Of a stretch of DNA of 64,000 nt, positions 19,601 to 60,582 are shown piece after piece. Every line of letters starts with the position of its first letter. Position 1 is the first letter of the stretch. This DNA is from Andalucia godoyi And28 (Eukaryota > Protista > Jakobida). The DNA is taken from the NCBI GenBank assembly GCA_009859145.1, contig VRVR01000045.1:31506-95505 (forward strand). Direction: 5' to 3'. Made by a program: the position numbers and the translations under genes. The notes under the pieces were generated by a model, which did no database searches, was not told the origin of the DNA, and saw only the letters and a program-made list of their open reading frames with translations.

Positions 19601-21939
19601 TCCGTCATATTTCCAGATGAGGAGGCTGATGCCGCTGCCGCCGAGTTTGTTCTTCCATGCACCCCGCTTTGCGGCTTTGATAGAGCAGCGGGGGCCAGCT
19701 TCTCGACGATCTCGTGTGGAAACTCTGAAAAATGCGCGAATGCACGCTGCGTTTTCGCGAGCCTGCTCAGGCCATTGCGGACCGCAGCAATTTCGTTCCT
19801 GTGCTCGTTGGCCGCGAGCCTGGACTGCACGGCGACGCACAGTCCTGCCAAGGAATCAAACACCTGCTTGAAGGCAGATGACTGGTGTCGATTGCGATCT
19901 TCCACCTCCATCGTCATTTTCAACTGCATCTGATGAGATGCCTTGGCCTTTTCGACGTCCAACTCAAGATCTCGAATCTTTTGTCGAAGCGCTTCGTTGA
20001 CTGGGTCGACTTGATTGTACATCATTTCTTCATCCGAATCGGAAAAGTCGACATCTGCCAGGGATTCTTCTCCAGATGGTCGCGGCTTGCGCGTGGCGGA
20101 GCGAGCATGAGGAATCTCGTCTGCGTCGTTCTCTTCATCCCCTTCGTCCTGGTCAACGCTCCCAGCCTTTTCAACCTTCCACGCTTTGTTCCCTTTGGCA
20201 TCCTTGTGATCCTTGGCGTCCCTGTCGTCCTTGGCATCCTTGTCGCCCTTCACAGAACTCGATTCGGATGAAGGGACGGCTTCTTCCAGCGAGTCGTCTT
20301 GTGGCGCATGGGCGTCTTCGCCCGAACTGACAGCATCCTCAATGACGACAGTTCCAGCCGAACCAGATGACGTTCGTCTGGAATGCTGTCGCCGTTTGGA
20401 AGACCCGTCTGCCTTCTCGGAGTCCTCGCCAACGGACTCTGTTTCAGTCTCTGAAAACGTCGTTGTGTGTCGGTGCGTCGAAATCTGCGAGCCGTCCTCT
20501 TGCTTCATGTTCGCCATGGAGGGCTGCGACTGCAACGAGTAGCGACTGACTTGCCTGAGCAGCTGCCCAAACTTGTCCTTCATCTTGTTCAGGCGCTGGA
20601 TGGACGGCGACTGAGAGTGCGGGACATACGACCCTCCCATAGCCCTATCGAGGGCAGAGCCCTGGCTGTCCAAGGCCTTCAGAATCCGGTTCATCTTGTC
20701 CTCTTCTTCCTTGAGCCGCCGCATCTCCTGCTGCTTTTCCGAAATCATGTTTGCAATCTGACCAGGCTCCACATCGGCCCAACGCATCATCAGTCTGCGC
20801 TTCTCTGCACCCTCATCGTCCGAATCATTACCGTCTGCAAGCATCGGCAGCGCAACCTTTCGATTCGTCTCAATCTCCCATGCCCGAAGCGACTTTCCTG
20901 CTCGCTTCACATTCTGCTGTGCATCTGTCCAGACATTCAAAATCTCGCGCTGACGCTGTCTATACTGATTAAGCGTTTCGCGGTCCTCCAACGTGCGTGC
21001 AATGAATGCTTTCGCAGAACCTTTTCGTGAAAACCCTGCCAGCCCTTTGCCCCCCGACCGTGGTCTTGCTGGCATATCCGGGGCATACAGCGGGTCCAGC
21101 TTCAACTTTGCTCGTGCGGGCTGCGAGGATGATATCGGTCGGTTCGCCATCTGCAGTGTTGCTGCATCTGCCGCGGACTCGGGACGCCGAATCGGAATTG
21201 GGTTCAACCCATCCGGAACGCCCACGTCGGTGGAGAAGCCACCAATGTTCAAGTACTGTCTGAGAACATCCAGTTCTTCTTCGACTTTTTGCTTTTCCAA
21301 ATTCACGGTGCGCAGCTTGTACCGCATCTCCGACGTGGACTCGTGAAACGAACGCTTGACTTGCTCTGCAGATGCCACGGAAACTCGCAATTCCTCCAGA
21401 AACCCCAGCATCTCGGGACTTTTCGAGCGGTGTGCAAAATCCGCTGCAGCCGTCGAAGGCCGAGGGAACACATCCACGATCGAACTCAACGGTACGTCGA
21501 CGACATCCGTGAACAACATCGACTTTTCAGATGCTGAGGCTGAGGCCGAGGTAAGCTCGTCTGGCTTGCTCAAGTGGCTCGCTGGCGATACTCCTCGACC
21601 ACCCCGTCCACCATGCCCACCCCCTGAGGCTGACGACGACGTGCCACGACTGCTCTTGGAAGTCGTGTGTGGCCGAACCATGTTGAGAGACAGGTCCGAT
21701 TGTTCTCCGGCCGCTCTGCCTGGAGACGGCGACCGCGGCCCCTTGATCCCAGCTCGAAAGCGCTGCGCAAACGAAAACGACGTGTCGCCAGCTTTCTTCG
21801 AGCCAGTCGGAGACGTGTCAGAAGGCTTCTTTTCATAATACCAGAAGTTCCCAGAACACTTCAGCTCTGTTTTTTCCGTGTCCGTCCTGTCTGAATTGCT
21901 GGAGTGTGTGTGCTGGTCATGATCCTCGCCGGTTCTCAT
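16696..21939 (-). CDS. Large hypothetical protein (coiled coils, long disordered region, folded C-terminal domain)
   Basis: 1747-aa ORF with several heptad-like segments, Ser/acidic low-complexity tracts, polyQ and a hydrophobic C-terminal ~300 aa. Confidence 0.75.
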   Translation of the reverse strand: MRTGEDHDQHTHSSNSDRTDTEKTELKCSGNFWYYEKKPSDTSPTGSKKAGDTSFSFAQRFRAGIKGPRSPSPGRAAGEQSDLSLNMVRPHTTSKSSRGTSSSASGGGHGGRGGRGVSPASHLSKPDELTSASASASEKSMLFTDVVDVPLSSIVDVFPRPSTAAADFAHRSKSPEMLGFLEELRVSVASAEQVKRSFHESTSEMRYKLRTVNLEKQKVEEELDVLRQYLNIGGFSTDVGVPDGLNPIPIRRPESAADAATLQMANRPISSSQPARAKLKLDPLYAPDMPARPRSGGKGLAGFSRKGSAKAFIARTLEDRETLNQYRQRQREILNVWTDAQQNVKRAGKSLRAWEIETNRKVALPMLADGNDSDDEGAEKRRLMMRWADVEPGQIANMISEKQQEMRRLKEEEDKMNRILKALDSQGSALDRAMGGSYVPHSQSPSIQRLNKMKDKFGQLLRQVSRYSLQSQPSMANMKQEDGSQISTHRHTTTFSETETESVGEDSEKADGSSKRRQHSRRTSSGSAGTVVIEDAVSSGEDAHAPQDDSLEEAVPSSESSSVKGDKDAKDDRDAKDHKDAKGNKAWKVEKAGSVDQDEGDEENDADEIPHARSATRKPRPSGEESLADVDFSDSDEEMMYNQVDPVNEALRQKIRDLELDVEKAKASHQMQLKMTMEVEDRNRHQSSAFKQVFDSLAGLCVAVQSRLAANEHRNEIAAVRNGLSRLAKTQRAFAHFSEFPHEIVEKLAPAALSKPQSGVHGRTNSAAAASASSSGNMTDPVASIAGLAQELPDMFDGIFAFFEKVSSSGRDRSEELQKEVDSFKEEAAVLRSEVHFEKERNARLFDQVQSLNAELEAHIDDSAQIARVQAPKETRSVGLQVRTLTEDSIRRKHAGEQQQQQQQQLLSSIAAADGSKRDVSPHSASGGGGSGSRSVYRTGSILEEVEDELPDDDFQVDHEYRPPSQQSSRRHSPDATEHKAESGKKTKKKSKSGDAPSSSSGAATSSSLAAAKFTKTKRGKAATKTGPSSTVRDALAAPPEVVEPEGSSSVSKRKDTSPSSKKQGTKDQDGPSNVRAAKASDKRDGRARSGSTLSSQRSPAVLDREPLGMFESGMSASTPTTTSAVAPGSAPTTALASTKSARDQSMTLQVPGSSNGLTGSPDSSRSARSDVEHVNRSGRSPSTTRSPEVQQWNMPSNSTAGAPATGSSSSGSAITPILSRIKPVLGGANRDPSRGGLNTQRTQDSGEGTNRSRPSIKFSEYVGRITYPRHSMTSSIESDLQKALEGEQGRADDHSDSDAESDAGSDRASSVATLPELQQLDMYEDMDEDDRISRAQTYPTHFDWESGIKKPEKRYRSFFSRVHSIIALLSLRKRTVARGVKPLTPPTPHPASLAQADSVSQLSAKQSEQSLQSELDLKEDKKATDIVLSLSSLVVGRLLEVMRERRAEATLSLQLEKLKNSKSGQGRLRALPWVLKNLANVYSTIISSNLSDIRMSDAAFEIFATRFGLRKIAEQNFLDFSVSTESMKHQSLRVKTFVDFLLEKHDSLALKCYLLVLNKLNSVGLGFLQPSVQSHSQLVLLRSRAFEVLSSVVSQWDSSPSETEVVTFLDALPPVDTSKNRMRGRAAMQDMREPVFDFDTFLSGVVAFYEARELALASRKVYVESGDLKSALRDVFESACVGEADSLMSIDAFRRACMILFGSVPLGSDAEFLTVLNARKLRKFAFSDFLSTLPSVVLLASAAPVI

Positions 21940-26588: not shown

Positions 26589-27869
26589 ATGTCAGAGGTT
26601 GAAGACGAGACAGTGGCGTCGGTGGTGCTGGCACTGGTGGTTGTTGGGGTTTTGTATGTGCTGGTGTCGCGGCGGCGACGAGAGACGCTTTCGAAACGAG
26701 CTCCGACGAAGATCCATGTTTCGTCGTGGATGGAGTTTCGAGTGGGGACGTGGATCATGGCGGTGCTGGAGAAGTTCAAATACACGTGTTCTCCGCCGTC
26801 CGTGCAGCTTATGGAATACGCTTGTGGGTACTGGAACTCGGCTGCAATGTATGCAGCGGCGAAACTCCGACTGGCGGATTTGGTGGAAGACCATTTTCCG
26901 TCGCCGGTCTCGACGTATGATTTGTCGCGGAAGCTGGCGGTTCACGAGGATGATCTGTACAGACTGATGCGCGCGCTTGCGACCAAGGGCGTGTTTGCGG
27001 AAACTCCAAACAGACACTTTGTGCAGACTCCGCTCTCCGATATGCTCCGGACGAACCACCCGCTGTCGATGTGGGGCGCTGTCGTGAGTCTGCATGAAGA
27101 ACAGCGCCATGCGTTTGCACGCTTGTTTGAGTCGGTGGACCAAAAGGTGGCTACCGCAGCTCCGAGTGTGCCGCGCAAGTCTGGGTTTGAAATCGAGTAT
27201 GGAGAGCCATTCTACGACTATCTGGACAAGCATTCGCACCAAAGCAAGCTGTTTGACGAGTTCATGAAGGGCGTCAGCAATGACTCAATGCCCGTCATTG
27301 CTCAGGACTTCCACTTCGAAAAGTATGGCACCATTGTGGATGTCGGCGGCGGCGACGGGACGCTGCTCAAGACCATTTACGAAATGAATCTTGCAAAACG
27401 GTGCAAGGGTTGCAAGAAACTGCGCTGCCAGTCCCACAACTGCATTCTCTTCGATCGGCCCGCCGTGGTTTCTCTGACGGAATTTCCGACGACGGTCGTG
27501 GTGAAGAAGGCCGCCGGAAGCTTTTTTGATGCCGATACCATCCCAGTGGGAGACTTGATCATTCTGAAGGAGGTTCTGCACAACTGGACAGACGAAAATT
27601 GCCTCAGGATCCTCTCGTCTGTGTCACAGAGAATGTCCGGAACGAACGCTCGCATTCTTGTCATCGATGTTGTCTTGTCGGAACTAAAGGACTGCGATCA
27701 CCTGCGAGCCCTAAAGACGTTCCTGGACCTGCACATGCTCACCATGCTTCGAGGAATGGAGCGTACCAAGATCCAGTTTGCGGAGCTTGTTGCCAAGGTT
27801 GGTTTGGAAGTCGAGGCCATCATTCCTATGCGAACCGTATACTCGGGCATCCTGCTGAAAAAAGCCTAA
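26589..27869 (+). CDS. SAM-dependent small-molecule O-methyltransferase (COMT/ASMT-like) with N-terminal TM anchor
   Basis: Dimerisation helix-turn-helix (AAAKLRLAD...LYRLMRALATKGVF); SAM motif IVDVGGGDG; GSFF; LKEVLHNWTDENCLRIL; DLHML...GMERT. Confidence 0.9.
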   Translation: MSEVEDETVASVVLALVVVGVLYVLVSRRRRETLSKRAPTKIHVSSWMEFRVGTWIMAVLEKFKYTCSPPSVQLMEYACGYWNSAAMYAAAKLRLADLVEDHFPSPVSTYDLSRKLAVHEDDLYRLMRALATKGVFAETPNRHFVQTPLSDMLRTNHPLSMWGAVVSLHEEQRHAFARLFESVDQKVATAAPSVPRKSGFEIEYGEPFYDYLDKHSHQSKLFDEFMKGVSNDSMPVIAQDFHFEKYGTIVDVGGGDGTLLKTIYEMNLAKRCKGCKKLRCQSHNCILFDRPAVVSLTEFPTTVVVKKAAGSFFDADTIPVGDLIILKEVLHNWTDENCLRILSSVSQRMSGTNARILVIDVVLSELKDCDHLRALKTFLDLHMLTMLRGMERTKIQFAELVAKVGLEVEAIIPMRTVYSGILLKKA

Positions 27870-28188: not shown

Positions 28189-29629
28189 TTACCACTCTGC
28201 GTTGGGAGGCCGATTCTGCCGCATCCAGTTATTAAACATCTGGATCGGCTTGTCGGTGCGGACATACTTGTCCATTCGCCATCCATACTGTCGAGGTCTC
28301 TGTCGGGCAAGGACCACATTGTCTTCGTGGAAGAAGATATCGCGCTCCATGAGAACAAAGAGTTTCGACAGCAACGGTCCGAGCACCGGCATCCGCAAAT
28401 GGTTCTGCGAATGGCGCAGAATCATGTACGCATGGTCTTCGTCAACTGGCGAGATTGCGACATAGAAGAACCACTGCGGATCGTACTTGATGATCAGAAA
28501 TCCTGGGAAGTACATGTGGGTTTCGATGTACACCGAGGTTGGATCCCCGTCCTTCTCTTCGAATTTCCCGCTCATATGGAGTCCTCTGTCATTCGGGAGT
28601 GGCTCGCACTTGTACTCGCGGACGAGCCTGTTCCTGATTCCCGTCGCCGCCTTGTAAATCCAGTTTCCGTGCAGTACTCCAAAGTGCGCATGATCCAGCA
28701 TTGTGTTCTCGACGAGGCGGTGATAGGTATGGGGATACTCGCGCCCTTCCGCAAACGTGTTCCACTTGTCTCCTCGCACAACGGGGAGATTGTGCTCTGC
28801 AGACGGCACGGGTGGGAACCCCTCTTCCCGGTCATCGCCGTACCACATCCAGATGTATCCAAACTCTGACCGGCACGAGCTTCAGCGCGTGTCCGCGGTG
28901 CGCCGTCGGCTCGGTACTCTCCGTAGGCTGCCTGACGCACTTTCCAGTCCTATCAAACGAGAACGAGTGGTACGGACACTGGATGCACGACTGGCCGTTC
29001 TCCTTGACAATCTTTCCTCCGAGCGTCAGCGACGCGCCACGGTGCGGACATCGATCGGAATGGCACACAACACCGCCATTGTCGTCTCTCCACATTGCAA
29101 AGTCGACTCCAAAGCGGCGCACATGCATTGGTGCTTTCCTCCCGAGCTTCGTAGACTCGAGAACACCATACCATTGGTTGTACGGCCACCAGTTCTGCTT
29201 CACCGTCTCCTTGCGCATCTCCTGCTCCGTCGGCAAAATCAGCGGGGCATTCCCAATCGAGTAGCTCGAGAACGTAAGCAGCCTCTTTAGTCCCCGCCAC
29301 AGCCTCCGGGCCATCCATTCCACACCCCGCAGCCCTGCATACACTCCCGCAATCTGCAGAACCAGAGGAAGCGCGGGCAACTGCACGTACGCGCACGCAG
29401 CACCAAGGCGGTCCTGCAGGCCGAGCGCCGGGATCAGATCACGCAACTCTGCCAAACTCAAGTGCGACCACCCCCACGATCCCCACGATCCCCACGATCC
29501 CCACGACCACGTCTCAAGAAGCTCCGGGCGGTACATCCAAATCCCTGCAAGCACCGCTAAAATCCCTGCAAGCGCCGTTCCACGCACTGTGGACCCGCCA
29601 CTCCGACCTGTGCGGATTCCAATCGACAT
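28189..29629 (-). CDS. Membrane-anchored Rieske non-heme iron oxygenase, interrupted by an apparent 2-nt frameshift at ~28865
   Basis: The 5' ORF has TM segments and Rieske ligands CPHRGASL...CPYH. The 3' ORF has the mononuclear Fe motif DHAHFGVLH and a later HED. Restoring AG in GTCAGAG[AG]TTTGGA gives a continuous VPVREFGYIWMWYG and ~480 aa. Confidence 0.8.
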
Positions 29630-30126: not shown

Positions 30127-33100
30127 ATGAGGTTTGACGTGTTCTTGTCGATAACTCCGACGCCGGTGGATGGATTTTGTCCTTTGGAGAGCGAGATGTG
30201 GAAGAATGCAATGGAGCAGGTGCGGGTTGCAGATGACGCTGGGTTTGAAGTTGCGTGGTTCGCAGAATCGCATTTGTCGCACAAGGCACAGCTTCGCAAT
30301 CGACACCCGGTCACGCCGTCGTTTGAAGGCGAAATCGGACTGAACTCGGACTTTCCGCAGCTTGCAACACGTGTTTTGAGCTGCACAAAACGCATTGGCG
30401 TTGGCGCAGCGGTGTTGAACATTCTTTCTAATGGGGGGCCAATCGCAAATGCAGAGTGCATTGCACAGCTCATCAGCATGCACACTGCGCTCAGCTCGGA
30501 CCCCAACCGGGAAATCCACGTGGCATTTTCAGCGGGGCGATTTGAGTATGCGCGTCGAGCATTCGGCGTGCTTCCTCGTAACGAATATGAGAGCATCGTG
30601 TGGGAGGAGCTGCAGCCGCTCGTTTTCAGAGAGGCAATGGAAGTGTTTGTGCGGTTGCTGAGGGGAGATGTGCTCAGGGCGGACCAAATCGCCCCGTGCA
30701 TCTTGTCTGCACATGAAGTCGCGGACCAAGCAAAATGGTTCTCGTTGCAAAGGGCTCTTCGATTGAGAGACGCGAAGAGCGATCGGGCAGGCCAGGCATC
30801 CCCCGAATCGAATAACCCTTGCTCGTGGTGCACGGACGTAAGGCGAATTGACGAGCACCAGGTGCAGTTCCCGCTCCGCTTCATCTTTCCCGATCAGCAT
30901 ATTGGCGTGATTTCGAGGCCGCAAAACGCATCATGTCTAAAGTTGCTCGTGGCGACACATGATCCTTTTCTGCAGCGATTGGCAAACAAGTGGCTCCCCG
31001 TGCAAGTGTGCAACTTGTCGGTGACTCCGGCGGACGTCATTGATCAAACACACGAATTGATGAAGGAGGCGTACCATCCAGCAGGTGGTCCCTGGATGCG
31101 TGAATATATGCCCCGCACGGTGTTGGTCTTCTTGAATGCGGACTCGTCGCTCACAGAAGTTCAACAGAACGACGCAGCAAAGAAATCGGCATTGGCGGCG
31201 CTAAAGTCGTATTGGAAGGCCGTGGAGGGTACCATTTTGGATGAGGATTCGCCAGCCAACAACATGAGAAATGCAGTGTGGGGTTGCCCTGCGCAGGTTG
31301 CCGCGCAGCTGCGAAATAACTATCATGCAGACGACAGACTAATGCTGTGGTTTGATTTTTTCAACCACGACTCCGTTGCAGTGTGCAATTCCATGAAGAA
31401 TTTTATGAGACTTGTGGTGCCCATGCTGAACGATGTCATACACCCGCGCATCTTGCAATCCAATGCTTGCATAGCGCCGAATAACAACGTCAATCGTAAC
31501 AGCAACAGTACGAGAACCGGCTCCGTGGAGATGCTGGCATCCGGCTACAGTGCGGCTGTCAAGGGGACCCGTAAGGAAATCGTCGTTGTAATTGACCTTC
31601 TTCCACCAATTGAAAACGCCGATGAGGCTTCGTGGACTGCCGATTGGCTGCGGAGTAGCAGTGCGCAAGATCTTGAGGTCCGGGTGTTCAAGGGCATTGA
31701 CGGCATTTGGCCAACCGAGTATGATTTGGCGGGGTGCTTGGCAGTCGTGCTCACGGGGTCGACGTGCTCTTGCGTCAACGACTATGATCATACCGAACCT
31801 TTGTTCAAGTTCTTTGCGTCTGTCATTCGTCTTGAAATTCCCACATTGGCGATTTGCTACAGCGCACAAATGCTAGTTCGATGGATTGCGGGGAAAGAAC
31901 ATGTTCTGCGGCTACCTGCTCCACATGTCGGATTCGTGCAAGTTTCTGCCATGGCGGATCGAGGTTTCGGCAGGTCTGCCACTCTGTTCAATTCCATTGG
32001 CGCCAGTTTGATTTCCACAAGCGCGCAGTCGGACGGTTTCATTGTTCCAGATGAGAACATATCGTATGAGTTGCAAGTCGGGTCGTCGAAACAGGAAACG
32101 AGATTCATTCACACTGCGTCTGCTGAAAAATGGAAGTATCAGGGGTTCCAGCTGCTTGGCCTTCCTGTCTGGGGCGTGCAATTCCACCCAAACTGGCCCT
32201 GCTACGGCTCCGAGACAGTGTTCAACCTGTTGCAACGCGGAAATCCAGCCTTGGTCGTGGAACGACAAGGCGAGTTTCGAGATGCAGATCAGTTCTCCGT
32301 CGGAAAATCTTTCTTGGAAGCGTGCCGTCACCATGTTATGCTCAAGTGGGTGGTCGGCATCCATCTGTCCGGCCTGACCAACCTGTCCACGCCCAGCTAT
32401 GTGGCTCCCAAGGACCCCTCTGTGACCGCAGCGGCCGAGGCAAGTCGTGGAGATGGCTCCCTGTGGACTCGAGGATATGGAGACAATGATCAAGGGTGTG
32501 TGTCGCTGTCGGGAACCTCCATGAAGATGGCGTATCGCGTAATGGCGGTTCTACCAGGCTACTCTTCTGAAGCAGAAGCTACCATTCGGCAAATCATTGA
32601 ATCCACCTTTGAGTCGATTCACAGTGTTGCGAACAATTTCAATGCAGAGTCGGAGATTTCCAAGGCTATCGAGCATTTCCGGCAAGGCGGAGAGGAGATT
32701 CGCATCTCTTCTTTGCTGGAACGCCTCCTGCGGTCCACATTTGATGCGCACCTTGTGACCAATCGATTGTTCGATCCGACAGTAGGGAGCATCAAGAAGC
32801 TGTGGAAGACCCAGGATGGTGTGCCGGAGGACCAGAGGTCGTCTATGATGCACACGATTGGCCTTGGACGTTGGTATGTATTGCGAAAGGAAGGTTGCAA
32901 TGCGGCTGTGCTGTCTCGCAAGCATGCCAAGTCGCCGCAGTGTGCTCTCTTGGACATCGACCTGTGTTCTATTGCCAAGGGCTTTGCGGTCGATTTGATT
33001 TGCGAGCGCTTGTTGGAAAGTGGGGTAGTCCGCTATTGTGTGGAATGGGCAGGAGAGATCCGGGTTCGCGGTTCAGATCCCAGTGGTCGTCCGTGGAGGA

Positions 33101-34632
33101 CTGAGATTGTGCGGTTTTTGAATTCCTCGTCAAATCGCCAGAGCATTGTTTCAGATGAGCTTTTTACCACGACTTCCTCGGTCGCGGCCCCTTTGAATGC
33201 TTCTCTAAACGGCGCCGGAAAAGAGAGCCCCGAAGCTCGGGCTGCAAAGCGGCGCCGAGCTTCTGGCGATTCGTGGGAGGATGTGGGGAGCGCGCAGTTG
33301 ACTCCAATGTCTGTGAGTGACAATCGATCCTTCATTTCTTTTGACCTGGCGACTCTGCACCCCGCACAAGAGCTTGCGCTGGCGACGAGCGGCACATTCT
33401 ACGAGTCGCTTGGGAAGGACAGGAGCCACATCATTGATCCTCTTTCGGGAGAGCCGGTTGTGGTTGTTAGGGCTTCGCCTGTGTGCGTAACTGTTGTCGT
33501 TTCCACAGAAGCCGGTCCTTTGAAAGGCAGCTACCAGCACGATGCGTGCGCATGGGCCGATGCGATTGCGACTGCTGCAATGACAAAGTCGAGTGCCGAA
33601 GAAACGGCAATGTATCTGTGGAACATCATGCACCGCCTTCCGGAGCGGTATACCCACACGCTCCCTCCGAACCTCGCGATCCTCGAGTTCTTTGTTACCT
33701 CGAAGTCTGGAAGAACGTTCAATCGCGCTAGTGTAAGCGACCTTGTGGCCGTCCAGACGTCTCGAATGGTCACCAGTCTTCCCCTCCCCGTCTGTGTCCT
33801 CGTCGCCCGAACACCGTTTTCCTTTGCGGGCAACAGCAATGGAACAGCCAACAATGGTGCAACTTCGAACCCGAGTGAAAACACGAAATCTCCGCGTACA
33901 AATGACCCGTCAAACATTGGGTGTTTGTGCACCTCGGCGTTCTTCTCGAGCTCTGGATCATTCATCGTTTCGCTCGGAATCTCCAATCGCCTGTGCCGTC
34001 TTCTCACGAACGCGGATGGTATTATTGTCACCGACCTCATTGCATATTTCCTGTCTCCGACGCAGCACAATCTGGCGCGTGAGATACTGGATAGCAGTTC
34101 CGACTCTCCGATTCTCAGCGATGCAACATGCACGTTGCTGCATGACGGCGCAAGTCGGTCGTGCACGGTGAAGCTCACGGCGTCGTATCCGATGGGCGAC
34201 CACGTCGTGTTCGTCGGGTTTGTGCAGGATCAAGCGTCTGGCAGCGACTGCCGTGGAGACCGAGACTTTCTGTCGTATGCTCGCAAGGAATACTTCACAC
34301 AGTCGGTGTTCTCGAATGACAGCGAGCTCCCGCAACCAAAGTCGCGTGTCATCCAGGAGTTGACCGAGTCCACGGGGTCGATTCTTGGTGACCAGCCGAT
34401 TGCCACGGGAGTGTGCTCCGTCCGACCGCCCATCTTTTATGCAATGACGACTTCAAAGGCCGGTGGCTGGGTCAACAAGAAGGTCACGCTTTCGGTGCAG
34501 GAAACTGATCCCGAGGGATTCTCGACGTTCGGTCCGCTCAAGTCCGTAGACGGCATCGTCTCGCGCGTCATTCACCTTCCCAAGCAAGCCGCACTCCTCA
34601 TGATCGACGCTCTGCGGATCAACGGGAAGTGA
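30127..34632 (+). CDS. Four-domain fusion: luciferase-like monooxygenase + class I GATase-like + ApbE flavin transferase + flavin reductase
   Basis: LLM: GFEVAWFAESH, TKRIGVGAAV, VWGCPAQVAAQL (~30127-31437). GATase-like: VVLTGS, LAICYSAQ, GVQFHPN (~31570-32330). ApbE: FDPTVG, DLCSIAKGFAVD, ATSG, HIIDP, ADAIATA (~32500-33720). Flavin reductase: PLPVCVL..., GDHVVFVGFV (~33735-34295). Single 1501-aa ORF. Confidence 0.85.
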   Translation: MRFDVFLSITPTPVDGFCPLESEMWKNAMEQVRVADDAGFEVAWFAESHLSHKAQLRNRHPVTPSFEGEIGLNSDFPQLATRVLSCTKRIGVGAAVLNILSNGGPIANAECIAQLISMHTALSSDPNREIHVAFSAGRFEYARRAFGVLPRNEYESIVWEELQPLVFREAMEVFVRLLRGDVLRADQIAPCILSAHEVADQAKWFSLQRALRLRDAKSDRAGQASPESNNPCSWCTDVRRIDEHQVQFPLRFIFPDQHIGVISRPQNASCLKLLVATHDPFLQRLANKWLPVQVCNLSVTPADVIDQTHELMKEAYHPAGGPWMREYMPRTVLVFLNADSSLTEVQQNDAAKKSALAALKSYWKAVEGTILDEDSPANNMRNAVWGCPAQVAAQLRNNYHADDRLMLWFDFFNHDSVAVCNSMKNFMRLVVPMLNDVIHPRILQSNACIAPNNNVNRNSNSTRTGSVEMLASGYSAAVKGTRKEIVVVIDLLPPIENADEASWTADWLRSSSAQDLEVRVFKGIDGIWPTEYDLAGCLAVVLTGSTCSCVNDYDHTEPLFKFFASVIRLEIPTLAICYSAQMLVRWIAGKEHVLRLPAPHVGFVQVSAMADRGFGRSATLFNSIGASLISTSAQSDGFIVPDENISYELQVGSSKQETRFIHTASAEKWKYQGFQLLGLPVWGVQFHPNWPCYGSETVFNLLQRGNPALVVERQGEFRDADQFSVGKSFLEACRHHVMLKWVVGIHLSGLTNLSTPSYVAPKDPSVTAAAEASRGDGSLWTRGYGDNDQGCVSLSGTSMKMAYRVMAVLPGYSSEAEATIRQIIESTFESIHSVANNFNAESEISKAIEHFRQGGEEIRISSLLERLLRSTFDAHLVTNRLFDPTVGSIKKLWKTQDGVPEDQRSSMMHTIGLGRWYVLRKEGCNAAVLSRKHAKSPQCALLDIDLCSIAKGFAVDLICERLLESGVVRYCVEWAGEIRVRGSDPSGRPWRTEIVRFLNSSSNRQSIVSDELFTTTSSVAAPLNASLNGAGKESPEARAAKRRRASGDSWEDVGSAQLTPMSVSDNRSFISFDLATLHPAQELALATSGTFYESLGKDRSHIIDPLSGEPVVVVRASPVCVTVVVSTEAGPLKGSYQHDACAWADAIATAAMTKSSAEETAMYLWNIMHRLPERYTHTLPPNLAILEFFVTSKSGRTFNRASVSDLVAVQTSRMVTSLPLPVCVLVARTPFSFAGNSNGTANNGATSNPSENTKSPRTNDPSNIGCLCTSAFFSSSGSFIVSLGISNRLCRLLTNADGIIVTDLIAYFLSPTQHNLAREILDSSSDSPILSDATCTLLHDGASRSCTVKLTASYPMGDHVVFVGFVQDQASGSDCRGDRDFLSYARKEYFTQSVFSNDSELPQPKSRVIQELTESTGSILGDQPIATGVCSVRPPIFYAMTTSKAGGWVNKKVTLSVQETDPEGFSTFGPLKSVDGIVSRVIHLPKQAALLMIDALRINGK

Positions 34633-35129: not shown

Positions 35130-38100
35130 ATGGATGAGGTTCCGGAACAGCATTTCCTGATTGGAGGGCTAGAGTGTGTGGAGAACTGTGTTCGGAGGAT
35201 ATGCGATGCGGTCCGTCTGCTGCCGGGCTGTCACGACTGTCATGTTGCTTCCTTTTCGGACGGGTTGATGGTCGTGAAAGGGGCTGTGGACACTCTCGCG
35301 ATTTTCGAGGCGGTCTGTGCCCTCGGCTACACAATCGACGTGGCCCGGGCCGCCGACGCCGCCGCCGCCGCCGTGTGCGTGGTTGTGTGCGTGGTCGACG
35401 CTGACGCTGACGTGGAGATGGAGGTGGACAGAAGGCTCGTGTCTGCAATCGGGCATTTCGAAGACGTCGCTCGCGTCAAGGTGTCTCGATTTGTGCTGGA
35501 CTCCTGCCCTCGTGCGGCAATTGTATGCAGCTTGCGACGTCCATCGGCATTCGCGTCCGCCATCACCTCCATCATCGATACTGCATCAGGCCTCGGCTTG
35601 TCTCCGCAAACACCTGCTTCGCGTCAGTACGATTTGCTGCTGCTGGACCACCCCGAATCGACGACCGTCGACACCATCCTTGCCTTCCTCACCCGTCTTC
35701 CAGGCGTCCTCTCTGTGTCCTGCCTCCCAAGCCCCCCGAACCCTAGCTTGGCGAACCCTAATCCTGGCCATTCTCGCTCCCGTGAAGGAGCGGTGCGGGT
35801 GCTCCGCGTGACGTGCCACCTTGCAGACCCACAAGCGCTGACGTCGCGCGCGGCCTCGGCACCCCTGCACTCGCTTCTTGTCCCGCGGGACCACAACCCT
35901 AATCATCCTAACCACCGTAACCCTAACCTTAACTCCACTCCGCTTTTTAAAATCGGAGCATCACCCTCCTCGGCAGCCGCAAAGTCGGCCACGGACCAGC
36001 CGCCGCTTGTGCTGCTGGGCTTTGTAGTCGACGGCATGCGGTGCCAGCACGGGTGCGCAGACTATCTTGCGGATCTCGTGGCGTCGCGGGCGTCGGAGTT
36101 TGGCGCGGGCATCACTGCCGTCAAGTGCACGAAAGCGACGCGGATGCTGGTGGTCGCGGTGAACATGACGGGAGCGGGATCGGGATCGGGATCGGGCATT
36201 GCGAGCCATCAACTTGCCTCGATGCGGGAGAAAATCGCCGCGCTGGCGGCGACCGAGTACGACCGTTGCGATGCAGTGGACTCGATCTCGCGGCTGGTGT
36301 TCACGGGGCTGCGCGGGATGAAGTGCCAGCGTGGGTGCGCCGATGCTCTTGCACGCACTGTGCTGACCACGGTCGACCGCGTGCTCGATGCTTCCTGCTC
36401 GTTCGAGGACGCCGTGCTGACGGTCGACCTTGCGGTTCCGCGTGGAAACGAAGCTGCAGTCGAGCGCAGCGCCGCCACTGCGATCCACCAACTCGTTCTC
36501 TCTGAAGAGTATTCGTGCGATTCCAGCACTGGCGATGACGATGGCGCGGGGGTGCTCATGGACCGATTCCCATGGTTCGGGTACTTGCCGATCGCGCGCC
36601 CTTCGTCGTCTTCTCTCGTGCTTCCCATCGAGAGTCCTGATGGTGGCGCGAATGAAGATGGCTGGAAGTTCCCAGCTACTGGCCATCATGCCTCGGCGAG
36701 CACAGAGATGGACAGGAAAAACGTAGAAGAAGAAGCGGAATTGGTAGTGAGGCGAGAAGTGGAAGTGGATAAGGAAACGGCAGCGAGGAAAGAACGAGTG
36801 TCGACCTCCGTGTATAAAGTGACTGGGATGACATGCACGTCATGTGCGAATGCAATCAGCAAGAATGTGCGGTCAAAGGCAGGCGTTGTGTCGGTGGAGG
36901 TGTCGGTGATGACGGACCGCGCGACTGTCGTGCACGATCCTCGACAGACGTCCGCAAAGGCCATTGAAGCTGTGATTTCCAAGATCGGGTACGGCTGCTC
37001 GTTGCTATCCTCGACCCACCAGGCCGATGATGCGGATGATACGGGTGAGTTGAACAAGAAGCATGGAGCCGGGGCTGCGGGCGGCGAGGAAGTGGTTCAG
37101 TATGCATTTGCAGTCGCCAACGTCACTTGTGCGAAATGCATCGACAAGATCTCTGCTGCAGTACATGCCCTCGATCCAGTTCACGTCGCCTCGGTCACTC
37201 TCGACCCCCTCGATCCCATCGACTCCCGGCACAGGAATGGCAGCAGTGGGGGCGAGGAAGAAGGGGATGGTGGTCGCGATGCGAATCCAGGGACTGACGA
37301 TGATGCTGTTGTTGGTGGTAGTGGTGGTAGTGGTGGTAGTGGTGGTAGTGATGATGATGATGATGATGATGATGCGGACGAACCATCATCGTCGTTGTCG
37401 TTTGCAACAGCGGTTCAATCTTGGCTTTCGCGTATGCTTCCGTTCTCGCGCGGCGGACATCGCATTCGCTCGACTCGGTTCAGCGCCGGTGCTGGCTCTG
37501 GCACACGACCTGCGACGCAGAGAATGAAAATGACGGTGACGCTGTCGGATGCTCGATTCATCCGGCTGACTTCTCCATCCACCGCATCGACCTCGGCATC
37601 GTTCTTGTCACCGTCGACGAATGCCGTGGTATCGCGGTTCACAAACGATGCAGAAGGAGAAGGAGAAGGAAAACAGAACCAGCAGCCGAGGAAGAAACTT
37701 GGGCCGCGGACGATTGTGGCGATGCTGGCTGCGCTTGGATATCCATCATCGTATCTTGTGACAGATGCGAATGCGGCGCTCAAGGAGTCGCTGCTGCGCA
37801 AAGAAGAGATTGCGCTGTGGCGTCGACGGCTGTGCATCTCGCTGGTATTTACAGTACCGCTCCTGCTTCTCAATATGTTCTTTATGCTCTTTGCGCCGTC
37901 GTCAACATCCATGACGGCCATGTTGTGGGTCGGCATTGTATCGTGGATCCTCGCGACCCCCGTGCAGTTCTACTCCGGGCACGTATTCCACCGAAATGCA
38001 CTGAAGGCCATTCGCTCGGGCTCAGCGACGATGGACGTGCTTGTCTCGCTCGGTACTTTTGCAGCGTACTTGTTCTCCGTCGCAGCGCTCCTCCTGACCA

Positions 38101-40235
38101 TCTCCATGACCTCCTCCTCTGCCGACGGGCACTCCGACTCTGGCTCCTCAGACGACGTGGAGACTCCCCAGTATTTCGAAACCTCTGCGACACTCATTTC
38201 GTTTCTGCTTCTGGGAAAGTTCCTCGAAAGCGTCGCAAAGTGCAAGTCGTCGGCTGCAATGGTTCGGCTGCTCGATCTCAAACCGTCCACCGCCCTTCTT
38301 CTGGAAGGCTACACGGACACCTTAGACACGAACGAGAGCGATGGCGACAGGAGTGCGTCGTATGTGGCGGAAAAGGTCGTAGCGACAGAGCTTCTGGAGC
38401 CCGGTGATGTGCTGCGGGTGCGCCCGGGTGACAAGGTTCCGTGCGACGGGGATGTGCTCTCTGGCTGTGGGACAGCCGACGAGGCGATGTTGACGGGCGA
38501 GTCGGTCCCCGTAGCCAAGCAAGCTGGCAGCTCGGTGCTTGGTGGAACGGTACTGCGTGACGGCGTGCTTGTCATCCGAGCCGAGCGCGTGGGTTCGGAC
38601 TCGGTGTTGGCACAGATGGTCCGGCTGATGGAGCAGGCGCAGGCACGAAAAGCTCCTGTGCAAGCGCTTGCGGATGCCATTTCAGCAGTGTTTGTACCGT
38701 TTGTCGTGGCGCTCGCGATCGCTGTCTTTGTGCTGTGGCTTGTTCTCGGGGCAACGAATGCCTATCCGCACGAATGGCTGCCGAGTGGCGTGACTCCTCC
38801 TGTCTTTGCACTGCTTGTGGCGATCACGGTGCTGGTCATTGCGTGTCCGTGCGCGCTCGGTCTTGCGACTCCGACTGCCGTTCTCGTGGGAACGGGCGTT
38901 GGTGCTGAACTTGGCGTCCTCATCAAGGGCGGCGCTCCACTCGAGACGGCTGCCCGCACCCAGATCGTCGCATTCGACAAGACAGGCACACTCACTTGCG
39001 GACAGCTCGCCGTCGACAAGGTGCACTTTGAAGATGGAACGCAACCAAGGCTGCGCGTGCTCGTCATGGTAGAGGCGCTTGAGAGAATGTCGGAGCATGC
39101 GATTGCGAGAGCGCTTGTCGCGTATGCGAGAACCGAGTGTAAGGAACACTGGGACGAAGCCACCCGGTTTGGCATTGCGCCGCGCGACGTGCAGACGCAT
39201 CCAGGGCTCGGCATCGCGGGCGTGTTTTCACAGTCCTCTCTGACCCTCTTGGACGCCAAGAAGGTCAGTGCTGCGGCGATGGATGCAGGCGAGGGTGCTG
39301 GAGAGACTTCGGTGGTGATTGGGACACATCGGTTTATTGCGGAAGTGCATGGGATCGTGATGCCTTCGTGGGCCGTGTCGCGGTCTGCAGACTATGCGTC
39401 GGCGGGGTTGTCGCTGGTGTTTGTAGCAGTGAACGGAACAGTGACTGCGGTCTTTGGGCTTGGCGACACGATTCGTCCCGAGGCAGCAAGCACAGTGTCG
39501 TATCTGCAGCGCAGTCTTGGGCTTCGCGTGTACATGATCTCGGGCGACAACCCGCTTGCTGCGCGACGAGTTGCGCAGCAGGTAGGGATCCCACTTGACC
39601 GAGTTGTGGCGGGTGTGCTCCCGGCTGGCAAGATCGATGCGATCCGTTCGCTGCAGTGCTTTGGGTCGGTGCCGCAGAGCGCTGGGCACGATGCAGTGGT
39701 TGCGCGAGTCGAGGCGACCAACGCAGCGCGGATTGCACGCGGCAAGCGGCCGGAAGTGTTCACCGTTGCGATGATTGGCGACGGGGTGAACGATGCGCCG
39801 GCAATGTTGCAGGCCGATGTTGGAATTGCAGTGGGAGCTGGAACGGACGTCGCTCTCGAGTCCGCGGGCATCGTGCTGATGAAGGACTATTTGTGGGACG
39901 TCGTCGTCGCTCTTGATCTCTCACGCACCGTGTTTCGCCGAATCAGACTGAACTACGGATGGGCGCTCGGATACAACATCATCGCAATCCCCATTGCGGC
40001 CGGCGCACTGTTCCCTGTCACTCACTGGCTGCTGCCCCCGGTCGTTGCAGGCGCGGCAATGGTCTTCTCCTCTGTCTCGGTGCTTCTCTCCTCGCTGCAT
40101 CTCAAGAAGTACCAGCGCCCGCCGTCGAGGTTCAATCTTGGAACCAATGACGATTCGGACCATGAAGGCAACACCGATCGCGATGTTGCTGCATTCTCTG
40201 AAGATGAGCGCGAGCAGCTTGTCGAACAAGCGTAA
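35130..40235 (+). CDS. ATP7: P1B-1 type copper-transporting ATPase
   Basis: TGES, ACPCALGLATP, DKTGT, SEH, GDGVND, YN and MxxSS motifs, plus five N-terminal HMA-like Cys motifs. Symbol denotes the family (ATP7/CCC2/RAN1), not proven orthology. Confidence 0.92.
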   Translation: MDEVPEQHFLIGGLECVENCVRRICDAVRLLPGCHDCHVASFSDGLMVVKGAVDTLAIFEAVCALGYTIDVARAADAAAAAVCVVVCVVDADADVEMEVDRRLVSAIGHFEDVARVKVSRFVLDSCPRAAIVCSLRRPSAFASAITSIIDTASGLGLSPQTPASRQYDLLLLDHPESTTVDTILAFLTRLPGVLSVSCLPSPPNPSLANPNPGHSRSREGAVRVLRVTCHLADPQALTSRAASAPLHSLLVPRDHNPNHPNHRNPNLNSTPLFKIGASPSSAAAKSATDQPPLVLLGFVVDGMRCQHGCADYLADLVASRASEFGAGITAVKCTKATRMLVVAVNMTGAGSGSGSGIASHQLASMREKIAALAATEYDRCDAVDSISRLVFTGLRGMKCQRGCADALARTVLTTVDRVLDASCSFEDAVLTVDLAVPRGNEAAVERSAATAIHQLVLSEEYSCDSSTGDDDGAGVLMDRFPWFGYLPIARPSSSSLVLPIESPDGGANEDGWKFPATGHHASASTEMDRKNVEEEAELVVRREVEVDKETAARKERVSTSVYKVTGMTCTSCANAISKNVRSKAGVVSVEVSVMTDRATVVHDPRQTSAKAIEAVISKIGYGCSLLSSTHQADDADDTGELNKKHGAGAAGGEEVVQYAFAVANVTCAKCIDKISAAVHALDPVHVASVTLDPLDPIDSRHRNGSSGGEEEGDGGRDANPGTDDDAVVGGSGGSGGSGGSDDDDDDDDADEPSSSLSFATAVQSWLSRMLPFSRGGHRIRSTRFSAGAGSGTRPATQRMKMTVTLSDARFIRLTSPSTASTSASFLSPSTNAVVSRFTNDAEGEGEGKQNQQPRKKLGPRTIVAMLAALGYPSSYLVTDANAALKESLLRKEEIALWRRRLCISLVFTVPLLLLNMFFMLFAPSSTSMTAMLWVGIVSWILATPVQFYSGHVFHRNALKAIRSGSATMDVLVSLGTFAAYLFSVAALLLTISMTSSSADGHSDSGSSDDVETPQYFETSATLISFLLLGKFLESVAKCKSSAAMVRLLDLKPSTALLLEGYTDTLDTNESDGDRSASYVAEKVVATELLEPGDVLRVRPGDKVPCDGDVLSGCGTADEAMLTGESVPVAKQAGSSVLGGTVLRDGVLVIRAERVGSDSVLAQMVRLMEQAQARKAPVQALADAISAVFVPFVVALAIAVFVLWLVLGATNAYPHEWLPSGVTPPVFALLVAITVLVIACPCALGLATPTAVLVGTGVGAELGVLIKGGAPLETAARTQIVAFDKTGTLTCGQLAVDKVHFEDGTQPRLRVLVMVEALERMSEHAIARALVAYARTECKEHWDEATRFGIAPRDVQTHPGLGIAGVFSQSSLTLLDAKKVSAAAMDAGEGAGETSVVIGTHRFIAEVHGIVMPSWAVSRSADYASAGLSLVFVAVNGTVTAVFGLGDTIRPEAASTVSYLQRSLGLRVYMISGDNPLAARRVAQQVGIPLDRVVAGVLPAGKIDAIRSLQCFGSVPQSAGHDAVVARVEATNAARIARGKRPEVFTVAMIGDGVNDAPAMLQADVGIAVGAGTDVALESAGIVLMKDYLWDVVVALDLSRTVFRRIRLNYGWALGYNIIAIPIAAGALFPVTHWLLPPVVAGAAMVFSSVSVLLSSLHLKKYQRPPSRFNLGTNDDSDHEGNTDRDVAAFSEDEREQLVEQA

Positions 40236-59978: not shown

Positions 59979-60582
59979 TGATTGAGTGTCGTGGGCCGAC
60001 GTCGATGCATGTCAGAATCTCCGGTCTCGTCCATTGAAACAGCTGCTTGTCCAACACTGTAACAGTCGGTAAGCACGGTGCCATTCGATCGCTCGGGAAA
60101 GTGTCGTCCAGGACGCTCTAAGACGCAAGCGATTTCGTCGGTTGTTCGGCGTACAGAATACAGGTACACCATGAATTACAATAAATAACAGCGAAAATAG
60201 AAAACAAAAGTGAAAAGAATGGCGTGTTTTCCCTCCTGCCGTAGACTGTCCGAAATGGCTCTCCAGTCTTTCCAAGCCTCGACCACTGTAGTCAGAAGGT
60301 GCGCACGTGGCAAAAAATAATAAAAAAACGAGTTGCACGCGTGATGCATCGCCATGCGTCATGCATGGAGGCTTTTTTTTCTCTTATTGGCAACTGTGGA
60401 ATTCAGCAGTCTTTGGTGACCTTGGGTTCGTTCGATCATTCCGCCTTCCTTCTTCGCTGTGCCTTCTTTTTTATTCTGATCTTGTTTCTCTGTTGTTTGT
60501 TTGTTTTGTTTTTAATTAAATTAGTGCAGTGGTCCTGATTTTGATCATTTTTGAAAAGAAAAAGACAACGAGTTCGTGGATC

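Follow-up and report, generated by a model that had tools for sequence, protein, structure and literature searches.

The open reading frame (ORF) at 30127 to 34632 of the window, that is, of the whole 64,000-nucleotide stretch of DNA that was analysed, is best explained as a genuine single-exon gene for one multi-domain flavoenzyme. As judged from the sequence, it joins a module of luciferase-like monooxygenase (LLM) and amidohydrolase in frame to a module of ApbE and flavin reductase. The predicted product reads best as a self-sufficient, Rut-pathway-like oxygenase and amidohydrolase that carries its own flavin reductase, and this explanation as a whole has a probability of about 0.5. The features considered are the following.

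30127..34632, forward strand: complete ORF, stop codon included, 1501 aa, ATG at 30127
30127..31446, forward strand: LLM domain, aa 1-440 (prokaryotic homology, AF2, Foldseek)
31447..31566, forward strand: linker 1, aa 441-480, N/S-rich (AF2 pLDDT <50; no conservation with relatives)
31567..32382, forward strand: class I GATase-like Cys-His amidohydrolase domain, aa 481-752 (Pfam, relatives, GMP synthase alignment)
32383..32496, forward strand: junction between the modules, aa 753-790 (homology on both sides)
32497..33726, forward strand: ApbE / FAD:protein FMN transferase domain, aa 791-1200 (Pfam, PDB chains), with a low-complexity insert at about aa 999-1070
33751..34302, forward strand: diverged Flavin_Reduct-like (HpaC/RutF-type) domain, aa 1209-1392 (family-specific profile, weak Pfam match)
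34303..34629, forward strand: C-terminal tail, aa 1393-1501 (single-sequence AF2 model unusable)
28189..29629, reverse strand: divergent neighbour, Rieske + VanA_C-type non-haem iron oxygenase, in two ORFs with a frame change near 28870
26589..27869, forward strand: neighbour, natural-product-type O-methyltransferase

An in-frame stop lies two codons 5' of the ATG at 30127, so the ORF has no N-terminal extension. At 53% GC the probability of 1501 codons without a stop is about 7e-29, and GC1, GC2, and GC3 along the whole ORF, linkers included, are coding-like, uniform, and the same as in the neighbouring eukaryotic genes. The coordinates, this composition, and this probability bear out the 1501-aa stop-free ORF claimed by an earlier, sequence-only reading. 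The four domains that it had called, in the order given above, were also recovered, three of them by Pfam and the Flavin_Reduct-like domain by a family-specific profile. Searched with the whole protein, Pfam returned in order Bac_luciferase (7e-9), GATase (3e-5), and ApbE (1.9e-30). The host is an intron-poor eukaryote.

Domain content of the predicted protein

The LLM domain passed the PF00296 cut-off of 27.9 bits with 35.9 bits in the whole protein and 40.3 bits in the segment. Compared with more than 2500 stand-alone prokaryotic LLMs, it showed 45-49% identity over about 93% of its length, and 118 of 143 columns with at least 90% conservation among 37 prokaryotic members are retained in it. 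The AF2 model of aa 1-440 predicts a TIM barrel with pLDDT mostly above 90, whose top Foldseek matches were 2i7g, 7bip, 8k74, and bacterial luciferases (E 1e-12 to 1e-8). The motifs that the sequence-only reading had quoted, AESHLS (aa 46), GEIGLN (aa 68), and MPRTVLVF (aa 328), are present in the protein and agree with the consensus of the prokaryotic subfamily. The resemblance of the LLM to an uncharacterised bacterial subfamily, which it had suggested, was borne out as well; the LLM belongs to this subfamily, which is large, unnamed, and prokaryotic, with members of about 410 aa in Poseidoniales/MGII archaea, Thermoplasmatota, Planctomycetota, Myxococcota, and others. The identity of the LLM as RutA was considered and rejected, as no RutA model in NCBIfam matched the window protein (E up to 1) or three prokaryotic homologues. 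Neither NCBIfam models nor Foldseek gave a close characterised LLM and, taking both results into account, the substrate class is a guess.

At about 160 prokaryotic loci, an amidohydrolase of the Asparaginase_II family directly follows the LLM. Of 84 loci, 69 have its start no more than 250 nt past the LLM, and of 80 loci, 66; an amidohydrolase is therefore the habitual partner of the LLM. The loci also conserve an SDR and an aldehyde dehydrogenase, in SDR-LLM-Asparaginase_II-Aldedh operons. The sequence-only reading had asked whether bacterial homologues are operon neighbours, and the answer was negative: across these loci GATase, ApbE, or flavin reductase never adjoins the LLM, and the fixed partner is Asparaginase_II, together with the SDR and aldehyde dehydrogenase.

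The GATase-like domain passed PF00117 marginally (24.1 bits in the whole protein and 27.6 bits in the segment, cut-off 22.8). It shares 52-58% identity with 7 relatives, in which ICYSAQMLVRW is invariant. Cys577, in AICYSAQ (aa 575-581), and His688, in QFHPNW (aa 685-690), align with the GMP synthase catalytic Cys and His, respectively, and neither residue varies among 8 relatives; the Glu of the class I triad is Asn in this domain and in all 8. By Pfam, the protein contains no ammonia-accepting partner synthase domain, and the PDB matches of the domain include the stand-alone gamma-glutamyl peptidase 1 and TM1158. The AF2 model of its C-terminal half was poor.

The ApbE domain scored 106.8 bits (E 1.9e-30) with PF02424, for a cut-off of 25.6, and was matched by PDB ApbE chains with E 4.5e-16. 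All the ApbE motifs checked are present, namely, IAKG (aa 949), ATSG (aa 1086), SHIIDP (aa 1100), and ADAIATA (aa 1144). The His of SHIIDP aligns with the residue mutated in 6nxj, a site at which 6nxi and 6nxj are not alike; the protein retains a counterpart of V. cholerae His257. By these motifs, the domain looks catalytically competent. A flavinylation motif of the Dxx[ST][SG]A[ST] type, strict or relaxed, is absent from the protein and from the long ORFs of the window. An intact ApbE with no target motif is not accounted for by a simple oxygenase-plus-reductase model.

The Flavin_Reduct-like domain fell below the PF01613 cut-off of 27 bits (12.7 bits, E=0.14), with the match on the same residues as that of a profile derived from relatives of the ApbE-Flavin_Reduct type, more precisely from their reductase domains. 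With this profile, aa 1209-1392 scored 20-22.7 bits, while 2000 shuffles reached no more than 6.0 bits. The reductase domains of those relatives themselves score 1e-10 to 1e-25 on PF01613 and match FerA, HpaC, StyB, and RutF models. On the strength of these profile matches, the domain is a homologue of the reductase part of the algal ApbE-Flavin_Reduct proteins. It is strongly diverged. The usual LTATS motif reads CLCTSA, a 30-aa low-complexity insert occupies aa 1233-1262, and the second reductase-like repeat of the algal relatives is missing. The single-sequence AF2 model of the region reached a pLDDT of 32.7. For the C-terminal tail, Pfam, profile, and database searches gave no match.

Proposed activity and rival readings

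In the proposed mechanism, the Flavin_Reduct-like domain would oxidise NAD(P)H and reduce FMN. The reduced FMN would pass to the N-terminal TIM barrel of the LLM, where O2 would be activated and a small amide-bearing substrate oxygenated and probably cleaved. The GATase-like Cys-His domain may then hydrolyse an amide bond of the substrate or of the product, a step that in the prokaryotes would fall to the Asparaginase_II-family enzyme encoded right after the LLM. The logic of the Rut pathway would thus be contained in one polypeptide, with counterparts of RutA (LLM), RutF (flavin reductase), and RutB (Cys amidohydrolase). It is established that a two-component LLM needs exactly a flavin reductase as its partner (PMC7662398), and the earlier interpretation of the two ends as oxygenase plus reductase was judged reasonable. 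The ApbE domain and the reductase came together, and in their parent family the protein probably flavinylates its own N-terminal motif. With this motif missing from the window protein, the most likely role of ApbE is some different dealing with flavin, perhaps the cleavage of FAD to give FMN or the transfer of FMN onto a non-canonical or trans acceptor.

It is also conceivable, if unlikely, that a real fusion has only a loose functional link between its halves: the ApbE-reductase part would keep its algal job, as a flavin-transferase/reductase unit, or be a decaying relic, and the LLM would be supplied with reduced flavin by another reductase of the cell, like its prokaryotic relatives. The parent ApbE-Flavin_Reduct family exists without any LLM, and the acylation signal, the flavinylation motif, and one reductase-like repeat have been lost here, the remaining reductase domain being diverged. 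Besides, the prokaryotic LLMs of the subfamily have no linked reductase, so the coupling of LLM and reductase is without operon support. However, the catalytic motifs of ApbE are all intact, the C-terminal half gives no sign of relaxation in its codon-position composition, and a flavin reductase is the very partner required by a two-component LLM (PMC7662398).

We regard as very improbable that ApbE tethers FMN covalently in cis, through a phosphoester bond with a non-canonical Ser/Thr, and that the flavin then serves the reductase and/or the LLM site. Intact catalytic motifs would allow it, and both the parent family and the kinetoplastid fumarate reductase pair ApbE with a cis acceptor, but a canonical or family-type acceptor motif is absent from the protein and from the other long ORFs of the window. 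It would be a long shot, too, that such a tethered FMN moves back and forth between reductase domain and LLM barrel as the captive covalent cofactor of a single-protein monooxygenase. LLMs are not known to use covalently bound FMN and, if the idea were true, this protein would be the first LLM to use it.

Origin of the fusion

No other protein with all four domains was found among 1.84 billion representatives. The architecture had been described as not known from elsewhere, and the exact four-domain combination is indeed unique in the databases searched, but each half exists as a two-domain protein. LLM and GATase are colinear also in one animal-like contig, and proteins with ApbE-Flavin_Reduct form a family of red, green, and glaucophyte algae. 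By this homology, the gene joins two pre-existing two-domain modules, not four unrelated pieces. The assembly from laterally acquired genes proposed by the sequence-only reading is plausible for the LLM; the ApbE-reductase half, however, comes from a eukaryotic family.

The LLM-GATase relative is homologous up to about aa 757, and from aa 760 the protein resembles the algal family, its APKDPS (aa 760-765) aligning with the HPxDDS motif that precedes ApbE there. The N-terminal MGC acylation signal and the [DE][ST]x[ST]xA[ST][LFY] motif of that family are replaced here by the LLM-GATase module. That the ORF is an artefact (misassembly or a collapsed junction, a sequencing error removing a stop, an unrecognised intron or alternative start), with the two halves separate in the cell, has little probability: the GATase-ApbE junction is spanned by no other sequence in any collection searched, the halves differ in their closest relatives, and the frame change in the adjacent Rieske oxygenase gene indicates that local errors or decay occur, yet the two modules meet in frame over no more than a few residues, with homology on both sides, coding-type GC1/2/3 runs through the junction, no Met occurs around the beginning of the ApbE part other than within its first conserved strand, and the ApbE half is devoid of the N-terminal region of its free-standing relatives, as a true fusion predicts.

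Comparison with known systems

The prokaryotic LLM subfamily shares with the window protein the identity noted above over the full LLM domain and the signature motifs, but its members stand alone in operons, whereas here the LLM is fused to three more domains. The ApbE half has some of its closest relatives in the ApbE-Flavin_Reduct proteins of Archaeplastida (for example, Pedinophyceae CAG9460248.1, Cyanophora paradoxa, Gloeochaete, Bangiopsis, and Timspurckia), with 33-39% identity; a stand-alone ApbE of Chlamydiia scores equally, with 42% over a shorter span. The Archaeplastida proteins have the HPxDDS-like motif before ApbE and the homologous reductase-like domain after it. They differ in being 600-990 aa long, with an MGC start, the [DE][ST]x[ST]xA[ST][LFY] motif, and two reductase-like repeats, while the window protein has one repeat and neither N-terminal feature. 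The NADH-fumarate reductase of kinetoplastids and algae, with an N-terminal ApbE, is likewise a eukaryotic, cytosolic or organellar case of ApbE in a multi-domain flavoenzyme and has the same Mg-site motif; its N-terminal Dxx(s/t)(s/g)AS acceptor and its fumarate-reductase/cytochrome b5 reductase body are both absent here.

A natural fusion of oxygenase and flavin reductase is StyA2B of Rhodococcus opacus and Variovorax paradoxus (PMC4460183, PMC6017014), which also places a two-component flavin monooxygenase and a Flavin_Reduct-type reductase in one chain. StyA is, in contrast, an FAD-dependent Rossmann-type epoxidase and not an LLM TIM barrel, and StyA2B is bacterial and has two domains only, without ApbE or amidohydrolase.

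The Rut pathway of pyrimidine degradation in E. coli comprises the LLM oxygenase RutA, the flavin reductase RutF, the Cys amidohydrolase RutB, and the RidA protein RutC (PMC7662398). The window LLM is no RutA orthologue, its parts are fused whereas those of Rut lie in an operon, and ApbE is added. The amidohydrolase is isochorismatase-like in Rut, GATase-like here, and Asparaginase_II in the prokaryotes of the LLM subfamily. Even so, the prokaryotic operons of this subfamily resemble Rut in carrying an amidohydrolase, aldehyde-handling enzymes, and sometimes RidA, and the predicted activities of the window protein have the same composition as those of Rut: an FMN-dependent LLM, a reductase of the Flavin_Reduct family, and an amidohydrolase with a Cys nucleophile.

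Reading frame and domains of the fusion protein

The fusion protein is encoded by a single reading frame whose ATG is at 30127 and whose stop codon ends at 34632 (+ strand, 1501 codons). Since an in-frame stop lies 2 codons upstream of the ATG, the protein begins directly with the luciferase-like monooxygenase (LLM). The probability of finding 1501 stop-free codons by chance at the composition of the window was about 7e-29, and the GC content at the three codon positions was coding-like, even along the frame (linkers and low-complexity inserts included) and the same as in the adjoining genes. The single 1501-residue ORF described in the sequence-only reading was thus confirmed. The LLM, GATase and ApbE domains that it had named were also recovered, in that order and each above its Pfam cut-off:

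aa 1-440, LLM, Pfam Bac_luciferase above cut-off
aa 481-752, GATase-like domain, marginal Pfam pass
aa 791-1200, ApbE domain (FAD:protein FMN transferase), Pfam above cut-off, interrupted by a low-complexity insert
aa 1209-1392, Flavin_Reduct-like domain, detected with a profile of the reductase domains in related ApbE fusions
aa 1393-1501, C-terminal tail, no domain call

Over about 93% of its length the LLM domain shares 45-49% identity with over 2500 prokaryotic proteins, which stand alone and are about 410 aa long; this homology is far stronger than the Pfam score implies. In 37 of these proteins 143 columns reach at least 90% conservation, and the domain keeps 118 of them. The motifs that the sequence-only reading gave for a bacterial subfamily are present both in the fusion protein and in the consensus of this family. 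The predicted structure of aa 1-440 was a confident TIM barrel matching LLM structures, with an identity of at most 17% to any solved structure. There is no NCBIfam model naming the prokaryotic subfamily, and identity with RutA was not supported in the NCBIfam model search.

The GATase-like domain is 52-58% identical to the seven relatives in the alignment. The Cys of AICYSAQ and the His of QFHPNW match the catalytic Cys and His of GMP synthase, and the Glu of the triad is replaced by Asn in the domain and in all its aligned relatives. The ApbE domain retains IAKG, ATSG and ADAIATA. It also keeps the His in SHIIDP, which aligns with a residue differing between PDB 6nxi and 6nxj. Pfam detected no fumarate reductase domain in the protein, strict and relaxed patterns found no flavinylation motif in it, and a six-frame pattern search over the window, other long ORFs included, found none of the family type.

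The call of a flavin reductase in the sequence-only reading held with the family profile and failed with Pfam (E=0.14): the profile from relatives' reductase domains gave 20-22.7 bits on aa 1209-1392, and none of 2000 shuffles exceeded 6.0 bits. The relatives behind this profile clearly belong to Flavin_Reduct (FerA/HpaC/StyB/RutF type). Only the family profile succeeded here, a direct phmmer search with the C-terminal part giving no match among the algal proteins, and a single-sequence AF2 model of aa 1200-1501 had a pLDDT of 33.

Gene neighbourhood and relatives of the two halves

The neighbours of the fusion ORF are eukaryotic (SMC, Cdc23/APC8, Sec24, ubiquitin hydrolase, TAP42 and P-type copper ATPase). 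Considering that these genes are long uninterrupted ORFs, with strand switches every 1-3 genes, the host is an intron-poor, gene-dense eukaryote of about 53% GC. A kinetoplastid origin, considered on account of ApbE, was rejected on these strand switches and on the lack of a fumarate reductase domain. Neither Rfam families nor tRNA genes turned up when the window was scanned. Two genes precede the fusion gene:

26589-27869, +, O-methyltransferase of natural-product type with dimerisation domain, upstream of the fusion gene
28189-29629, -, Rieske [2Fe-2S] and VanA_C-type oxygenase, oriented divergently to the fusion gene

The closest solved relatives of the first are the natural-product methyltransferases DtpM and AlpH. 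The second consists of two overlapping ORFs with a one-base frame change near 28870, where an intron would not fit; either the gene is a pseudogene or the sequence contains an error. Because three small-molecule tailoring enzymes adjoin, they may constitute a small metabolic gene cluster.

Elsewhere in the window, the P-type copper ATPase (35130-40235, +, 1701 aa) has a single HMA domain from residue 561 and an unusually long N-terminal extension without recognised domain. The ORF at 16696-21939 (-, 1747 aa) had no Pfam match at E <= 0.001, and that at 2009-3754 (+, 581 aa) carries a hAT-family transposase dimerisation domain. The latter and another 581-aa ORF at 60529-62274 were considered as repeats and found to be unrelated (26% identity).

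No second protein with the same domain combination was found in a HMMER scan of 1.84 billion representatives (query aa 302-1501) or in the metagenome scan, nor did the literature searched contain anything on the four-domain architecture, in agreement with the sequence-only reading, which had presented it as unrecognised. A full-length word-indexed search matched the query alone, apparently by low-complexity swamping, and relatives were sought domain by domain; metagenome and GTDB scans returned only stand-alone prokaryotic LLMs.

The two halves of the protein have separate sets of relatives. Relatives of the C-terminal part of the LLM and of the GATase-like domain, at 51-61% identity, occur only in AT-rich contigs (GC 32-38%). 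All of these contigs carry the GATase-like gene, at 54-59% identity; the regions concerned are:

L005:318-2472
L006-L008:10001-10825
L092-L094

Animal genes (7tm_1 GPCRs) flank it in the two contig sets with nameable neighbours, L005 and the contigs of the bdelloid rotifer Adineta steineri. In contig L005 the LLM lies upstream of the GATase and colinear with it, an arrangement which supports the LLM-GATase junction, although this copy is broken by a frame change and in-frame stops; the other AT-rich contigs retain the GATase part alone. Because the Adineta contigs keep the GATase and L005 keeps a degraded LLM too, it is suggested that an LLM-GATase gene was transferred into bdelloid rotifers and later lost its LLM.

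Among the best matches of the ApbE-reductase half are 23 eukaryotic proteins, 600-990 aa long. This algal (Archaeplastida) ApbE-Flavin_Reduct family (P0134, P0138, P0140, P0143, P0150 and 18 further proteins) has named members in Pedinophyceae, Cyanophora, Gloeochaete, Bangiopsis and Timspurckia. Its layout runs from an MGC start, an N-acylation signal present in most members, through [DE][ST]x[ST]xA[ST][LFY] and HPxDDS to ApbE and two reductase-like repeats. The second element fits the motif at which kinetoplastid fumarate reductase is described as being flavinylated, and the family looks like a membrane-anchored, self-flavinylating reductase; no paper on it was found in the literature searched. 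Since P0135, a stand-alone ApbE of Chlamydiia (42% identity, shorter span), scores as high on the ApbE half as the best algal fusions, there is a hint that the Archaeplastida ApbE is of chlamydial origin. The alignment of the fusion protein to the algal family starts at APKDPS (aa 760): LLM-GATase replaces the whole N-terminal part of the family, acylation signal and acceptor motif included, with a join only a few residues wide.

Operon of the prokaryotic LLM family

We compared prokaryotic loci covering about 1.5 Mb (L001, L002, L009, L011, L012-L091, L095-L174): 84 were metagenomic, and 80 came from the genomes of GTDB species representatives, with few exceptions MAGs. The sequence-only reading had asked whether bacterial homologues are operon neighbours. 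They are not: a tblastn search of these 164 loci gave no hit for GATase, ApbE or a flavin reductase beside the LLM. The recurrent neighbours were:

Asparaginase_II gene starting at most 250 nt after the LLM: 69/84 metagenomic, 66/80 GTDB
SDR in the locus: 64/84 metagenomic (53 upstream), 68/80 GTDB
Aldehyde dehydrogenase in the locus: 54/84 metagenomic, 66/80 GTDB

The order SDR - LLM - Asparaginase_II - aldehyde dehydrogenase is highly conserved, with the Asparaginase_II gene in almost all loci having sufficient downstream DNA, and the operon is Rut-like in composition. LigB, RidA, TDO and cyclase genes occur in a minority of loci. A kynurenine-pathway reading, taken from the first two bacterial loci, was abandoned, TDO, cyclase and kynureninase being confined to a minority. 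Its members are found mainly in Poseidoniales (marine Group II), other Thermoplasmatota, Planctomycetota, Myxococcota and Bdellovibrionales, and the genomes carrying it are nearly all uncultured MAGs. Nothing on this operon was found in the literature searched.

Proposed function and comparison with known systems

LLMs act as the oxygenase component of two-component systems, in which a reductase provides the reduced flavin that they need. In the fusion protein the C-terminal domain, belonging to a reductase family that serves LLMs, would supply reduced flavin to the LLM, and the Cys-His GATase-like domain would carry out an amidohydrolase step. Taking into account the reductase-family domain, the amidohydrolase partnership and the Rut-like set, we consider it about an even chance (0.5) that the protein is a self-sufficient oxygenase/amidohydrolase for an amide-bearing small molecule. 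Given that the prokaryotic LLM is partnered by an amidohydrolase and that of the fusion is joined to a different one, this looks like a non-orthologous replacement, a Cys-His amidohydrolase standing in place of Asparaginase_II for the same step.

ApbE, which is intact but has no acceptor motif, is the part left unexplained by the oxygenase/amidohydrolase model. It may provide FMN by cleaving FAD, it may work in trans, or it may tether FMN at a non-canonical site, which would be the most novel of these readings. Alternatively, the ApbE-reductase half could be independent in function or in the course of decay. The four-domain ORF could also have arisen as an artefact of assembly or annotation, but the GATase-ApbE junction is clean and in frame, the coding signal is continuous and the ApbE half lacks the N-terminal region that free-standing relatives carry.

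The combination in the fusion gene is new, while its parts and working principles are known. In the literature searched, eukaryotic ApbE is described only as a fumarate reductase fusion and called rare; the gene adds a new architecture, and the protein is a natural test case for ApbE function without its usual target. The gene is of value above all because it offers a functional lead for a very large LLM family: the fusion is a Rosetta-stone link between that family, an amidohydrolase step and a Flavin_Reduct-type reductase, which yields the testable hypothesis that an amide-bearing compound is cleaved oxidatively in a Rut-like manner. A self-sufficient natural LLM, if true, would be a useful biocatalyst scaffold.

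StyA2B is a natural oxygenase-reductase fusion (PMC4460183, PMC6017014), and RutA with RutF exemplifies a two-component LLM oxygenase and flavin reductase (PMC7662398). The LLM of the fusion protein differs from the Rut pathway in not being RutA, whereas the Rut logic of LLM, amidohydrolase and flavin reductase is reproduced, with RidA and aldehyde-handling enzymes in the prokaryotes.
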